Positions 34,621 to 44,748 are shown, numbered from the stretch's first letter. The stretch: 55,945 bases of DNA from Corallochytrium limacisporum Hawaii (GCA_002811645.1 PDIP01000099.1:1-55945); one strand, 5' to 3'. Translations and numbers: made by a program. Notes: generated from the sequence alone by a model not told the origin.

Positions 34621-35751
34621 ATGGATACTCTTATGGACTTCCAAGGGCACGGTGCCCCCGCCAACCAGGGCAGTGGCGGCCTCAACGATTTCCTCTGGGA
34701 GGATAACGAAAACCACTACAATGATGTGTGCTTTAATGCCGAGGGTGACATGAACGAGTACGCCGCACCGGGTATGGACAACATTGGCGGTGTCAACCTG
34801 GCCATCAGCGACGCTGAACTGAACAGTACTCTGGCGGATGTCTTTGGTATCTTCCCTGGTGCGAATGCCCCAGGTGTATTCAACACCAACCTCAACGCCC
34901 CTCAAAACAATGATGACTCTCAGGCTAACACACACTCTGATGTGGACTCTGCTAAGAAGCTTGCCCACTCCCCGGCTGCCTCTGCTGCCACCGCCGCTTC
35001 GATCGCCAGCGCAGGCTCCCCTGCTGCCACTGAGGGCGAGAGCGAAGGCAATGCCTCTTCCACTGCCGCCAACGAGCGCACTCTGGAGGAAAAGCGTGCT
35101 GCTCACATCCAGGCCGAGCAGAAGCGCCGCAATAACATCAAGGCTGGCTTTGACGAGCTCCAGTCCATGATTCCGGCCTGCAAGAAGGTACGTACCCGTC
35201 AGTCCAAGGCTGCTATCCTTCGCAAGACCGTGGACTACATCCAGTCCTTGCAGAAGGGCAATGAACAACTCTACACCGAGGTCAACTCCGCCCGCAAGCA
35301 GGTTGACATTCTCAAGATGGTGATCATGAAGTTCCAGCAGTCTGGCCAGGCCGTGGACCCCAACACGGGCGCCGCCACCCCCGGTTCTGTAATGGCTACC
35401 ACGAACGCGAACACAGGCAACACCGTCAAGTTCTACCTTTTCTGTGTCGTGGTAGACAAGCTGTGGGAGAGCTTTGATGCCTCAGTTTCCATCGACAGCC
35501 CGGAGGAGTTTGCCCGTACTCTGTCCCTGTGGCTCCAAAAGTGCTGCAGCCCGGATGCCCTGACAGACCAACTCTACTCGGCTCTGCGTGCCCTCGGCAC
35601 CATGACCCGTGAGAATGCTCTGAGCATCAAGAAGTGGACCGATGCCATCAACGCTGCCCGTGACGCCGTCGCTTCTCGCATCTACGGCGCCACTGCCGGT
35701 GCTCAACAACCGGCTAATTCTCTGAGCAACGGGGAGGCTACCATGGCATGA
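34621..35751 (+). CDS. bHLH-ZIP transcription factor of the Mlx/Mondo family with C-terminal DCD domain, 376 aa
   Basis: KRAAHIQAEQKRRNNIKAGFDEL...SKAAILRKTVDYIQSL, zipper, and VKFYLF...LWESFDASVS..S.EEF...LSLWLQKCCSP (DCD). First ATG at 34621; the ORF track start at 34513 is TTG. Confidence 0.92.
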   Translation: MDTLMDFQGHGAPANQGSGGLNDFLWEDNENHYNDVCFNAEGDMNEYAAPGMDNIGGVNLAISDAELNSTLADVFGIFPGANAPGVFNTNLNAPQNNDDSQANTHSDVDSAKKLAHSPAASAATAASIASAGSPAATEGESEGNASSTAANERTLEEKRAAHIQAEQKRRNNIKAGFDELQSMIPACKKVRTRQSKAAILRKTVDYIQSLQKGNEQLYTEVNSARKQVDILKMVIMKFQQSGQAVDPNTGAATPGSVMATTNANTGNTVKFYLFCVVVDKLWESFDASVSIDSPEEFARTLSLWLQKCCSPDALTDQLYSALRALGTMTRENALSIKKWTDAINAARDAVASRIYGATAGAQQPANSLSNGEATMA

Positions 35752-38988: not shown

Positions 38989-41439
38989 AGCTAAATAGTT
39001 CCCTTGAGTACGGCATCGACCTAAACCATACCTTGGGGATTGCACAATTATGTTCCATGATGTGGACTCCCGCTGGTGTTTCCGCGGGGCCGTTGCACTG
39101 GTTTTGCTGTGTGTAAACGGTGAAACCCTACTGCACCTCCCACGGGGACGGCGACATCCCGGGGCCCTCTCAATTTATCTCAGTGTAATCAATACCTTTC
39201 TCTCCTCCTCACAGTCCACCGTAAAATTAAAATAGTCAGTATATATATAAATGTACGTGGGGACACCTGTGCCAACGACAGTCGTTATAGTAAATGAATA
39301 AAGATATTAAACTTGATTGTCCGTTTTTCTCCATGCATATCCCGCTTACCCGTCAATCTGGCGGGTTGGGAGGGGGTTCAACTTCGTGGCGGGTTGACGG
39401 GTGGCGTACCACCACTACCCCACCTGCCGAGAAGGACCGAGTTCGGGCCCGGCACAAGCGGTAACGAACCAAACCGAGCCGCAGCGATGGGGAGATCCAG
39501 GCATGTGGAGTCCAGTACAATGTTCTTTCCAAATCAGGGTCTCTTCAGGAACCCTCTCCCCTGTTCTACCCTCGTTAACGCCGCTTTGGCACATTTGCAC
39601 TGGACAGGATACCCCATGTGACTGCAGCAACACATTGGTTTGGTGTCGTTCTCTTTCCTTTCGTTTCGGGTGGATCGTTGAAGCACCGCGCGGTTGCCCT
39701 ACTACAAAGGCAGACATGCGCAGAGCCGAAAGTCTGCCGACCCATCGCGGAGGGGATCTCGCAAGTTGGTAGGTTTGGAATGCAGTGTTTGGACCAGAAT
39801 GGTGGGAGCTGGGGGAGACGGTCGGGTCTGGGACACTGCATATCCTCTTGCCTTTTGGGTAACTTCACTTTGCGATGTGTTGAGCATCTGAACGTCATAC
39901 AGCTACCGCAGATACTACGAACGGGAAGGGTCCCACTGCGGTCGGCATGTCTCACACTGTTCAATCGAGTTCCGACCAACTCAGACCGCGCGGAACGGAG
40001 GCCAAGAGTACGCCCGCCACCGAAAACGCGAATCTTCAAATGGCCGGCAGCAGCAAGTGGAGAACCCGACTGTTTCTCCGTCGAGAGACAACTCGATCCT
40101 TAGCCGCTCTCCCAAATGCGGACAAACTGCCCAGACTCCCAAGAGACCCGATGCATACAATTAACAAAACCCCCACGTACACTCACCGGGCGCGTCCCTG
40201 GCACATTTCTCCCGAGCTTTCATGTCTCCAACGATTTGAAAGAAAACCCACAGATAGCTTTTTACCGCAGTGCCACTATACAACTCTCATCAATACCGGG
40301 TATGGCAGGATGGGATCACAGAGCAGAGATTCAAAGGCATCGCACGTGCAGATGGCTGTGTGGGGGTGGTGCGTACCTTAATGTTCGACCCCTAAAATTT
40401 GACAGCCGAGCCCCCCCCCCCCCCCCCATGGTGTTGTAGGCATCCGCAGTGATCGGGTCCTCGTAATCGAGTGTGCCGCCAGCATGTGTACAGTGTCCTC
40501 CGCTTGTGGTTCTACACTCTCAACAACAACAACCCTTTTCTTTTGTCTTTTGTTTTTTTTTTTTTCACCAGCCGCTCTCCCAGCCATTGTCCCACAATAG
40601 CCGCAGTACTGGAGAACAAGAGGTGCGCGGCGAAGGAAACTGAAGGGGGAGTCCAATTTAATCCATTCCCAGGAAGACAAAGGAAAATTTGTTGTACCAT
40701 GAAAAGATGGACTTTGCAGGCCCCTCCCTCCGTGGGCGATCGAGGGGGATGAGGTGGGGGGCGAGCTTTTGGGCAAGTTTGGGGATTGGATCCGGGATCT
40801 CTTTTTTTGCGCCAACAGTAAAAGAGTGATCGCGCAGACCAAGTTACCGTGGCACAGCGTTTGCATGTGTACATGACTGCGGAACGGGAGATCAACATCA
40901 CAGAGATCAATAGTGAGCGTACACACGTAATATATCTCTTTGGTTAAGAACAAACTGTATTGATTAAACACTGGTTAAAAGTGAGATAGATGGTCATGAT
41001 GGTTGTTGACCATGGCATTGTTCAAACTATCCGCAACCGTAAGGTACTGTTTGGCAAAAGTCTCAAGGAAAACACAGACGAATAGATGTGAAGGGCACGA
41101 TCCTGGAGTGCAATCGGACCTAATGAGGATCCTCCTCCGCCGTGATCTGCGCCCTTCGAGGGCATTAAAAGTTCCTCGCAGACTTGTTCTTCTTGCCAAC
41201 CTTGACGCGGTTTGCCAGAGCCAACGGACCATCGCATACTTGATTAAGTTACCCATGCATACCATTGCAAACGGTTAAGATGATTAAGTTCCTGATGGGC
41301 AAAATTGATTAAGGTTAAAGCCAATGTAGATATCATGGCAACGTGTTTCGTTAAAAAGGGAAAAGAAGAAGTTCCACGTGATGATGGATGAAGGAGTTTT
41401 TGCAATTTTGATATAAAGCCTTCAGACATGTTGAAGCCT

Positions 41440-42339
41440 TCACTGCTGAACCTCCTTTAAACGCACGAGCTTCTCAGTGAGCAGGCGCTGCTGCTCCAGG
41501 AGCATGGCGTACTCGTCTTCCATCCTGTCCTGCTTTGACCGCAGGTTGCGAATCTTGTCTGTGGTCTTGCGGAGAATAACCAGACGGCTGCTCTTGGCTT
41601 CAGTCTTGAGAGCAGGGAAGTACTTGGCCAGTTCCTCAAAGCCACGGCGGACAGCCTCACGACCTTCTTCGGCGTCACCACCGACACTAGAAGCCTGGGC
41701 ACTGATGCTCAGTGCACCGCGAGCAGACATTGGGCGACGGCCAAGCTCTGGAGGGCTCATCTTGCGAGCCATCGACAATGGAGAGGCGTCTGCAGGGCTG
41801 CTGGGCATGCTAGAGCGCGGGCTGGATGCAGCAGAAGGAGAGAAGTTGACGCGTTCTGTCAGTCGCTTCTTGATGCTGGACACGGTCACATGGGTCAGCT
41901 TGCGCTTGCGTGCAGATGACTTAGGGGTGGCAGCAACAGAAACAACATCGACGGAAGCCTCAATAGGCTGCTCGTTGCGAATAGGAGAAGCAGGTAGTGA
42001 GATAAAGGGGTGAATGTCATTGGTATCGCGTTTGGGAGAGGGCTGCAGAGAGGCGATCGAATGGTGCAGGTCCATCTCGGTCATGTCAAGGAGAGAAGCG
42101 GCAATGTCTTCCTCATTGTCCTCCTCGTCATGGAAAGAGTGGAAACCAGTTCCAATGACCTCGCCGTCGGTCACCTCACCCAGGTCCTCCTGGAACTCCA
42201 TAAGGAGGTCCAGAGCCTCAGTGGGCACATTCTTGTTGTTTCCCGCAAAGTCCAGCAGACCCAACAGGTCACCCTCTTCAATGTCGGACCCGTAAGTGTC
42301 CTCTATAAATAGCTCAGATGAATTTGTAACAATCGCCAT
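41440..42339 (-). CDS. Myc-like C-terminal HLH-leucine-zipper protein with a degenerate basic region, 299 aa
   Basis: REAVRRGFEELAKYFPALKTEAKSSRLVILRKTTDKIRNL plus a zipper at the extreme C-terminus aligns by eye to Myc [37 protein letters not shown]. Also EASVDVVSV (Myc box IIIb-like), an RKRK NLS and an acidic N-terminus. Confidence 0.8.
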   Translation of the reverse strand: MAIVTNSSELFIEDTYGSDIEEGDLLGLLDFAGNNKNVPTEALDLLMEFQEDLGEVTDGEVIGTGFHSFHDEEDNEEDIAASLLDMTEMDLHHSIASLQPSPKRDTNDIHPFISLPASPIRNEQPIEASVDVVSVAATPKSSARKRKLTHVTVSSIKKRLTERVNFSPSAASSPRSSMPSSPADASPLSMARKMSPPELGRRPMSARGALSISAQASSVGGDAEEGREAVRRGFEELAKYFPALKTEAKSSRLVILRKTTDKIRNLRSKQDRMEDEYAMLLEQQRLLTEKLVRLKEVQQ

Positions 42340-43049
42340 GATGAGCCTTGATGCATAATCTGTTTACCCGAAACCAAACCTGTTGGTTCTGTTAAATGTG
42401 TCCTGTTATGATACAAGAACTGTTTTCCTAAAGTCCCAAGAAAGTGAAAAAAGGGGTTAAGAAAAAGTCGCTTTTGGTGAAGTCGTAGCTTCTAGATGTG
42501 ATAGAATTGCTAAAAGGCAGTGGGAATGAGCTGTGAGGAGCGATTCGTGGTGCTCGACTCGAACAGCTACATAAGCCTGAATGCTACAACGTCGTAAAAG
42601 GGAGGGTTGTAACGTGAAAACGGCAACGTCAGGATCCAAGGATCATTCAAATAACTGCACAGTACGGCGCCTATTTGAAGTATTCACATATTCTATCTTG
42701 GTGTTTTGTTCGTCGGTAATTTGGACATTAACAACAAACACAACACAACACAAACAATAAAACTTTCCTCGGTAACACAACTGAACGGTTCTTCTCCGAA
42801 GGAAACAAAAGAGACCGTTCAGTAACAACGGAAACGTCTGTTCTCCGCCTGTGCTCCCTTCCCATAGCCCCCGGCTCCGACACATGCCCGCGTGCTCTTC
42901 ATCCTATGCTTTTCTTCTGCCTCACTCTCTCTCCTTGGTTCATGCCGCAGTAGTGTTAGTATAGCCCACGCGTCACGGTTGCCTTTCCCCTCCCTCTCTC
43001 CTTTCTGTCGCTGTGAGTGGGATTGATAATTGTTCCCAACCCCCCCCCC

Positions 43050-43356
43050 NNNNNNNNNNNNNNNNNNNNNNNNNNNNNNNNNNNNNNNNNNNNNNNNNNN
43101 NNNNNNNNNNNNNNNNNNNNNNNNNNNNNNNNNNNNNNNNNNNNNNNNNNNNNNNNNNNNNNNNNNNNNNNNNNNNNNNNNNNNNNNNNNNNNNNNNNNN
43201 NNNNNNNNNNNNNNNNNNNNNNNNNNNNNNNNNNNNNNNNNNNNNNNNNNNNNNNNNNNNNNNNNNNNNNNNNNNNNNNNNNNNNNNNNNNNNNNNNNNN
43301 NNNNNNNNNNNNNNNNNNNNNNNNNNNNNNNNNNNNNNNNNNNNNNNNNNNNNNNN
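43050..43356. other. Assembly gap (N run) flanked by poly-C and GGGG
   Basis: Run of N. Confidence 0.99.
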
Positions 43357-44748
43357 GGGGCCTCTTCTCATTTTGGATTAGAAACAATTAAGGAACACAT
43401 GTGGCCACTACATTTACTATGATGGACCACTCCCCAATTATTTGAAAGGGAAGGAAGGTGGGGGGGGGGAGGAAGAGCGAGGGACAAGAGGTGCGGAGGG
43501 GTCAATTAATCCGCCGCTTCCAAACTGCTCTCTTTCTTCTGCCAGGCACATGCTCAGTATTACAGCACTGGCTCAGTGTCATGGGGAGAGGATAAGCGCC
43601 CCCTTCACCTTCGCCGGGGCGAGAAGGGGGGGGGGGGGAAGAGAGCAGGCGAGAACACCTCCCCTCGTAAGCAGCGAATGGGGAGCCAAATGAAAACAAC
43701 AATAAAGAAAAAGAAGCCTCACATCGCCGCACTTAAGGGGGAAAAAAAAAGAAATCACTATATTTTTCCTCTGCGCGATTTACTGCAGTGGTAACCATTT
43801 TCCTCTTTGCCGAACCTCGACGCGGTCCCCATCCGCCGATGGCCGAAAGGGAGAAGGAGATAAGCGTCTTTTTTGTCGGGGGCAGGAGCTACCTTTTTGG
43901 CACTCCCCGGTTGAGATTTATACCGGTTTATCCATATGTTCAGTACTGGGGGACATGATTTCTGCGGAACCACCGACGCTCTGCTGGCCTCTGCAACAAC
44001 GTTGGTAGTCTGGCCTGTGGATAATTTCTCACTCCCCTCCGCTTCTAGCTTATCACACCCCCTTTTCTTTTTTCCTTAACATTTTCCTTCGCTCTGTCTC
44101 CTCGTCTCTGCGTTTCGGGCCATGTCAACAACTAACGAAGAGGGGGTGCAGACGGGAACTTGAGAAACCAAAGCCACTACTACCAACCACCGGACTTTTT
44201 GACCGCGTGGATAGGCAGGCTATCGCAAGCCATTTTCTTGCAAGAGAATCATACCGTCCTTTGATGAACCGTTCGCAGCGGTCCGTTGCTAATTTCACCA
44301 CTATCCATTTTCTATGGAACGCAAGGGCTCTCCCGCCCACTCCGACGGCTTTGGTCGTGACTGGTCGGACTTTCAGTTGTTGCTTCCCAGATTCCTGCGG
44401 TATCTGTCTCTGTTGTTCTCACTCAGATATAGTCAGGGTCGTTGTCAGAGTCATGCATCCAGCCCCTGCAATCGCTACATTCTCTGTCCTCTTGGAGAAA
44501 TTTGATGAACATCCAATCACACATGATAGGTGTCGCACTATCTCCCTATCTCTCGCCCCCAAGGCCACCGATATACCCTCCAATTTCTTTCTCTGCGCAG
44601 TATTACGCATACTTCAATAGGAAGATAAACAGGGAGCAGCGTGGTGGCTGTTTGGTTGTCTTCTCACTGGCCGGTGGTTGCTGTGAAAATAAGAAGAGAA
44701 AAAAAAGAAGGACAGTCTCTAGTCGCACGCCCGTGCCCAGAGCGTAAG

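Follow-up and report, generated by a model that had tools for sequence, protein, structure and literature searches.

A helix–loop–helix leucine zipper protein lacking a basic region in the unicellular holozoan Corallochytrium limacisporum: a candidate non-DNA-binding partner in the Myc/Max/Mlx superfamily

Corallochytrium limacisporum Hawaii encodes an intact helix–loop–helix leucine zipper (HLH-ZIP) protein in which the DNA-binding basic region has been lost. The gene lies in the window, by which we mean the whole stretch of 55,945 nucleotides that was analyzed (GCA_002811645.1 PDIP01000099.1:1-55945), and its features are collected in Table 1. Sequence comparisons support the assignment of this basic-less protein to the Myc/Max/Mlx superfamily (group B bHLHZ proteins). 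We posit, with a probability of about 0.5, that it is a lineage-specific, non-DNA-binding dimerization partner that titrates a bHLHZ partner and that arose independently of Id/Emc; by analogy with the known systems discussed below, such a protein would have a dominant-negative role.

The gene is an intron-less ORF of the minus strand that runs from ATG to TGA, and the ORF list contains no other long ORF at this locus. Only eight codons are open upstream of the ATG, giving an open frame of 307 aa. Transcript-like contigs were found in two public sequencing runs of 2015, X1 and X2, which come from two studies and whose RNA status was guessed by the tool. The X1 contig implies untranslated regions of ~217 nt (5′) and ~422 nt (3′), and X2 contigs cover 40937–42054 and 42303–42489; the gene is colinear with the contigs of both runs, with no joints, insertions, or deletions. 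Because the flanks at 40700–40936 and 42557–43000 have no coverage in either run, the contigs fit a transcript rather than genomic DNA, and their pattern resembles the transcriptome assembly of an intron-less mRNA, with the proviso that the RNA status of the runs is a guess. The intact ORF reported in the first-pass annotation is thus confirmed over 299 codons, and a spliced-in canonical basic region, which would have overturned the reading given there, was not seen in the X1 or X2 contigs, although assembled contigs can hide rare isoforms. Seven differences separate the X1 contig from the genome, four of them coding (codons 115, 278, 289, and 297) and all four synonymous, an outcome with a probability of roughly 0.004 if changes were unconstrained; the gene is apparently under constraint. 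The 3′ untranslated region contains one CACGTG E-box (41375–41380), about the chance expectation for the span, and at about 43040–43370, ~700 bases before the start of the gene, the sequence is a run of N, which contributes to the total of 787 N in the window.

Table 1. Positions of the basic-less HLH-ZIP gene, the parts of its product, and the neighboring bHLHZ gene in the window.
Feature	Position	Strand	Evidence
Complete single-exon CDS, 299 aa + stop	41440..42339	-	ORF list; colinear transcript-like contigs
Run X1 transcript-like contig, 1539 nt, entire contig aligned	41018..42556	-	No joints or indels
Acidic N-terminal third, residues 1–95	42055..42339	-	AlphaFold2 secondary structure
V-D-V-V-S-V, residues 130–135, Myc box IIIb-like	41935..41952	-	Motif match
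R-K-R-K, residues 144–147, ~80 residues upstream of helix 1	41899..41910	-	Sequence
Basic-region position, residues 215–227, Q-A-S-S-V-G-G-D-A-E-E-G-R	41659..41697	-	Pfam alignment start, translation, 26-paralogue alignment
Helix 1, residues 228–242; Gly-Phe at H106–H107, Leu237, Pro242	41614..41658	-	Alignment, AlphaFold2
Loop, 9 residues (243–251)	41587..41613	-	Alignment, AlphaFold2
Helix 2, residues 252–266; H201 Arg, H202 Leu, then V-I-L-R-K	41542..41586	-	Alignment
Leucine zipper, residues 267–299, in register with helix 2	41443..41541	-	Heptad read-out; AlphaFold2
L001, neighboring Mlx/Mondo-like bHLHZ, full basic region, post-zipper tail	34621..35751	+	Pfam HLH 59.9 bits; BLASTP to basic-less protein E 5e-8

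Proteins that read the E-box carry His or Lys at basic-region position 5, Glu at 9, and Arg at 12 and 13; the basic-less protein has Val, Ala, Gly, and Arg at these positions, so that the Arg of position 13 is the sole basic-region residue kept, and the segment has a net charge of −2. The first-pass annotation had described exactly these replacements and the net acidity, and it is correct in every detail. It also holds that neither alternative frame encodes a basic region: at about 41600–41800 both other frames contain stops and no basic stretch. The Pfam HLH model (PF00010) matches residues 227–267 over profile positions 13–53 only, leaving the basic part of the profile unmatched, with a score of 20.1 bits for the protein (curated cut-off 20.7) and 22.7 bits in a six-frame scan of the genome. 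That scan, which covered the whole C. limacisporum genome (24.1 Mb in 286 contigs), returned 27 HLH loci, among which the basic-less gene is the sole uninterrupted exon lacking the residues of positions 5, 9, and 12; the other loci, the atypical L018, L021, and L024 included, retain at least Glu9, Arg12, and Arg13.

The last 73 residues of the protein comprise the HLH and a five-heptad leucine zipper, and the protein stops where the zipper ends. The zipper d positions, which begin with the final residue of helix 2 (Leu266), are L, M, L, L, and L; the a positions are occupied by I, Q, Y, Q, and L. In an alignment of 26 sequences Pro242 is invariant and Leu237 nearly so (90% or more). Smith–Waterman comparison of residues 227–299 with the bHLH domains of the genome gives z values of up to 12.9, and 0 of 500 shuffles scored as well. 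AlphaFold2, run with 25 paralogous domains aligned, predicts helices at 220–238 and 252–298 with pLDDT above 90 for residues 221–299, the second helix being continuous at pLDDT 96–98. In a phmmer search of PDB sequences, the best match is the bHLHZ of human Myc (E 0.013–0.03), to which residues 225–295 align gaplessly, followed by Max (E 0.07–0.4). The top Foldseek matches in the PDB are OmoMyc, Max, Myc:Max, USF2, and MITF (target-normalized TM 0.71–0.88; USF2 0.50), with E-values of 0.1–4.6 for the top bHLHZ chains, none of which passes 0.001. We regard the prediction that the C-terminus folds as an HLH-ZIP as solid, and the earlier alignment of the HLH and zipper to Myc is borne out by the gapless PDB alignment. 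The N-terminal two thirds are predicted with low confidence apart from two short amphipathic helices (22–34 and 40–52; pLDDT 71–74 for residues 21–50). No Pfam family matches the N-terminal third, which, judged from the predicted structure, looks like an activation domain, and the R-K-R-K cluster may serve as a nuclear localization signal.

The basic-less protein is encoded in a genome with a full complement of related transcription factors. The first-pass annotation had proposed a search for a second, canonical Myc and for Max, and both were found. The canonical Myc (L011) is a single-exon gene encoding 261 aa that scores 55.7 bits to human Myc versus 36.6 to Max. In Max (L025; G000:C250:139574-142684), whose exons were read separately, the upstream exon holds the basic region, which runs up to the exon boundary (E-R-K-R); an intron (about 1400–1500 of the locus) separates it from helix 1, and the next exon starts with R-D. 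An intron near this place is also present in animal Max genes. A Max-like gene (L004), a Mxd/Mnt-like gene (L007), and four Mlx/Mondo-like genes with a common conserved tail after the zipper (L001, L003, L005, and L018) are also present. Of these genes, L011 lies on C231, L004 on C172, L007 on C178, L003 on C190, and L005 on C195. Given this set, the basic-less gene is an extra member and not the Myc of the organism. Two genes, one of Tam41 type and one for a homocysteine S-methyltransferase, lie in the 5.7 kb between L001 and the basic-less gene; given the density of the other 26 HLH loci over 24.1 Mb, the probability of meeting one within about 6.4 kb by chance is roughly 1.4%.

One paralogue bears the EukProt name Clim_evm40s199. 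L005 has an N-terminal stretch recalling the Mondo conserved regions, and L018 (G000:C178:78545-81688) has an open frame of over 860 aa and a partly degenerate basic region that has lost His5 but keeps Glu9, Arg12, and Arg13, with one residue inserted at the start of helix 1. L024 (G000:C172:54500-57625) and L015 (G000:C232:216-3365) encode a bHLH fused to a C-terminal CRAL/TRIO (Sec14-type) lipid-binding domain in the same open frame (CRAL_TRIO 100.7 and 101.5 bits, HLH 25 and 35 bits, respectively); this could be the architecture of a ligand-sensing transcription factor, and we know of no described example of such a fusion. On G000:C238, the oppositely oriented genes L022 (about 44.7 kb) and L023 (about 58.9 kb), 14 kb from each other, have nearly identical HLH domains and are the one pair with strong support in the HLH tree (97/93), which suggests that they duplicated locally and recently. 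One study has placed the origin of the Mlx family in the animal stem lineage and reported the family absent from other holozoans (PMC7003098); the four Mlx/Mondo-like genes may bear on this claim.

Comparisons with these paralogues place the Mlx/Mondo-like genes ahead of Myc. In phmmer comparisons with the HLH-ZIP, L001 scores 26.5 bits, L005 21.1, L024 20.9, L003 18.3, Myc 16.8, and Max 14.0, with Myc ranking seventh among the paralogues of the genome. BLASTP from the basic-less protein finds L001 (Table 1) and yields no significant match to Myc, and a search of the whole genome returns L001 as the best non-self match and does not return Myc. In a column-wise comparison the four tail-bearing Mlx/Mondo-like genes take ranks 1–4 (97, 78, 72, and 67) versus 60 for Myc; helix 1, with scores of 33–35 against Mlx/Mondo-like sequences versus 17 against Myc, accounts for most of this gap and contains the Gly-Phe pair common to the basic-less protein and its Mlx/Mondo-like paralogues. 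The conserved post-zipper tail of L001, L003, L005, and L018 is absent from the basic-less protein. Based on these scores and on the proximity of L001, we consider the chances about even that the gene originated by local duplication of a Mlx/Mondo-like gene.

Diagnostic sites of the bHLHZ families give a mosaic. In Myc, H201 Lys and H202 Val are invariant (McFerrin and Atchley, PMC3177325), and in Mlx/Mondo, Phe or Tyr at H107 and Ala at H202 are conserved, with Lys at H201 in Mlx (PMC3177325). The basic-less protein combines H107 Phe, as in Mondo, with H201 Arg, as in Max, and H202 Leu, as in Mxd/Mnt, and lacks both the Lys-Val of Myc and the Lys-Ala of Mlx; the Myc of this species itself has Lys and Ile. 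The 27 HLH domains of this genome gave a maximum-likelihood tree without a resolved placement, in which the basic-less protein sits on a long branch (2.39) beside Max and the clade holding the Mlx/Mondo-like genes. Constraining it to that clade costs 0 lnL, and constraining it to Max, Myc, or L001 alone costs 1.3, 1.8, and 3.4 lnL, respectively; the AU test rejects neither the placement with that clade nor any of the sister placements to Max (p 0.43), Myc (0.42), or L001 (0.25). The first-pass annotation had proposed evolution within the Myc family and suggested a phylogeny of the Myc network. Within these 27 domains, membership in the superfamily is supported and an origin within the Myc family in particular is not: the Mlx/Mondo-like paralogues score higher, H201 and H202 are not those of Myc, and the AU test rejects neither this placement nor the others.

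Two further sources were set aside as guides to family. The ranking of PDB matches puts Myc at the top by about 2.5 bits but carries no information on family, as the matches include no Mlx/Mondo chain and L001 itself matches BMAL1, Max, and Myc about equally. The neighbors of the protein in the ESM Atlas are generic fungal bHLH clusters (0.85–0.91) that hold no family-level information.

We consider it unlikely that the gene is instead of Myc origin, although several features would fit a Myc paralogue that has shed its basic region and competes with Myc for Max and possibly for WDR5. The domain aligns without gaps to human Myc, which is its top PDB match, and its loop of nine residues equals that of Myc, whereas the loop of L001 is longer. 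V-I-L-R-K of helix 2 is identical in the basic-less protein and L011; both are single-exon genes whose products have acidic N-termini and terminate directly behind the zipper. Myc box IIIb binds WDR5 through the motif IDVV (PMC10279693). V-D-V-V-S-V resembles this core, L011 has V-D-V-M-T-V at a similar relative place, and the hexapeptide class is rare, with seven DNA matches in the 24-Mb genome including the one in question. A crude zipper count, given below, repels Myc and favors Max, as expected of Myc itself, and sisterhood with Myc is cheap in the tree. Against a Myc paralogue stand the lower phmmer, BLASTP, and helix 1 scores to Myc than to the Mlx/Mondo-like genes and the replacement of the invariant Lys and Val by Arg and Leu. 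Moreover, VDVV is not preceded by an acidic run, and N-terminal similarity to Myc is at chance (z 1.1 by Smith–Waterman with shuffles, where no paralogue exceeds 2.1). Pfam Myc_N has no match in the protein, and neither Myc box I nor II was recognized. The language-model neighbors, too, are generic fungal bHLH proteins and not Myc.

Whichever family gave rise to it, an Id-like sequestering role for the basic-less protein is a reasonable inference, given a real HLH-zipper without a basic region alongside canonical Myc and Max. We hypothesize that the HLH and zipper let the protein pair with at least one canonical bHLHZ protein of the genome. The resulting dimer would have a single basic arm and so could not clamp an E-box, and the basic-less protein would thereby titrate its partner off DNA, in the manner of Id/Emc, of plant PRE proteins, and of engineered Mlx/ChREBP basic-region mutants. 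The last of these provide a precedent within the superfamily: changing the two arginines at basic-region positions 12 and 13 of ChREBP (R673A/R674G) produces a dominant negative, and dominant-negative Mlx blocks the glucose response (PMC1761440). A count of g–e′ charge pairs in the zipper, crude as it is, scores +2 for Max, +1 for L001, −2 for self-pairing, and −5 for Myc, and the two polar a positions (Gln, Gln) face the Asn, Asn of Max. These values point weakly to Max or the Mlx-like neighbor L001 as the partner, with Myc and self-pairing disfavored.

Other features sit less comfortably with an inhibitor. The N-terminus resembles an activation domain, which Id-type inhibitors lack, the acidity at the basic-region position is modest (−2), and an acidic, helix-containing N-terminus together with R-K-R-K does not fit a pure Id-type brake well. 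An activation surface or WDR5 contact might be delivered to the partner or away from it. As a positive partner, the protein would give an acidic activation domain to a DNA-bound bHLHZ protein or would shift the localization or site choice of its partner, and the amphipathic helices and the putative nuclear localization signal would both suit such a role. Some bHLHZ heterodimers tolerate one atypical basic region. In the basic-less protein, by contrast, the residues of positions 5, 9, and 12 are all lost and Gly-Gly-Asp stands where the recognition helix should run; the loss of just two basic-region arginines is already dominant negative in the superfamily (PMC1761440). We judge a positive partner improbable, about on a par with a Myc paralogue. 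A somewhat smaller chance still attaches to a natural equivalent of Omomyc or A-Max, in which a protein of the Myc/Max network with an acidic stretch where the basic region was, an activation-like N-terminus, and a VDVV motif of WDR5-binding type would act as a decoy that withdraws Max (or the Mlx-like partner), and possibly WDR5, from chromatin. Were this so, basic-less negative control of the Myc/Max/Mlx network would have arisen outside animals and independently of Id.

Searches for relatives elsewhere returned only the protein itself, both from a word-indexed search of 5.8 billion proteins (queried with the whole protein and with residues 222–299, E up to 10) and from an exhaustive phmmer search of 1.84 billion representatives. 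A look-up of contigs encoding the protein found nothing, and the Myc of this species (L011) matched only its own EukProt entry in the same protein search. This shows that these collections hold no close orthologue; distant relatives could exist, because an HLH this diverged cannot pass E thresholds at that database size. The best explanation is that the gene is lineage-restricted, and so far it appears to be the orphan of one species. Judged from titles and abstracts, the literature that was searched for Corallochytrium together with Myc and bHLH describes no such protein. What appears to be new is the occurrence, in a unicellular holozoan, of a member that derives from bHLHZ proteins and bears a zipper but no basic region; the class of mechanism is already known and has arisen repeatedly.

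Such an orphan on a long branch, with a Pfam score just under the cut-off, might be a decaying or functionless duplicate that is still open and transcribed by chance. We think this very unlikely, as the 299-codon ORF has stayed intact despite deep divergence, all five zipper d positions are hydrophobic and in register, none of the four coding differences changes a residue, and contigs cover the gene in both runs. The least probable reading of all is an error in the gene model, with the basic region coming from a spliced segment or a different frame: basic-region introns do occur in the genome (Max, L025), but contigs run unbroken over 41018–42556 and 40937–42054 and no frame at about 41600–41800 is basic, evidence limited by the rare isoforms that contigs can hide.

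Both animals (Id/Emc) and plants are known to have basic-less HLH inhibitors, and group D is held to have originated in animals. If the proposed titrating role is true, titration-type control of a growth and metabolism network can evolve independently in a unicellular holozoan, starting from a bHLHZ ancestor and in a genome that also has the full set of Myc, Max, Mxd-like, and Mlx/Mondo-like genes. Corallochytrium can be transfected, which makes the sequestering idea directly testable.

The proposed dimerization partner can be compared with several known systems. Id/Emc proteins are basic-less HLH proteins that sequester partners into non-DNA-binding dimers (PMC5267474), group D HLH proteins are described as metazoan-specific (PMC5064789), and plant proteins of the PRE/KIDARI type are non-DNA-binding regulators of typical bHLH proteins (PMC8987198). 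The basic-less protein shares with Id/Emc an HLH dimerization domain without a basic region, and sequestering would be its expected mode of action; unlike Id/Emc, it has a five-heptad zipper, an acidic N-terminal region, and helices of group B type. No Id chain is among its PDB matches at E up to 10, though Id1 chains are in the copy of the PDB that was searched, which argues for independence from Id. The plant PRE/KIDARI proteins are alike in that a bHLH lineage independently lost its basic region and unlike in belonging to an unrelated bHLH subfamily and in being small and zipper-less.

Among the bHLHZ families, the basic-less protein is like Myc in its loop length, gapless alignment, C-terminal bHLHZ position, and VDVV resembling box IIIb; it differs in that the invariant sites of helix 2 are not kept and that the Myc of the species is less similar to it than the Mlx/Mondo-like genes. 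In designed acidic-extension inhibitors of the A-Max type, an acidic segment replaces the basic region, and it is in this replacement that the basic-less protein resembles the Omomyc/A-Max class. To Mlx/Mondo it is alike in that these have the closest HLH cores in the genome, share Gly-Phe at H106–H107 with it as in Mondo, and include its nearest paralogue, 5.7 kb away. It is unlike them in being tail-less, in having Arg and Leu instead of Lys and Ala at H201 and H202, in its shorter loop, and in zipper a positions that are polar at the two places where the Max network is polar. Finally, it resembles the engineered Mlx and ChREBP proteins, basic-region mutants of the Mlx/Mondo family that act as dominant negatives (PMC1761440).
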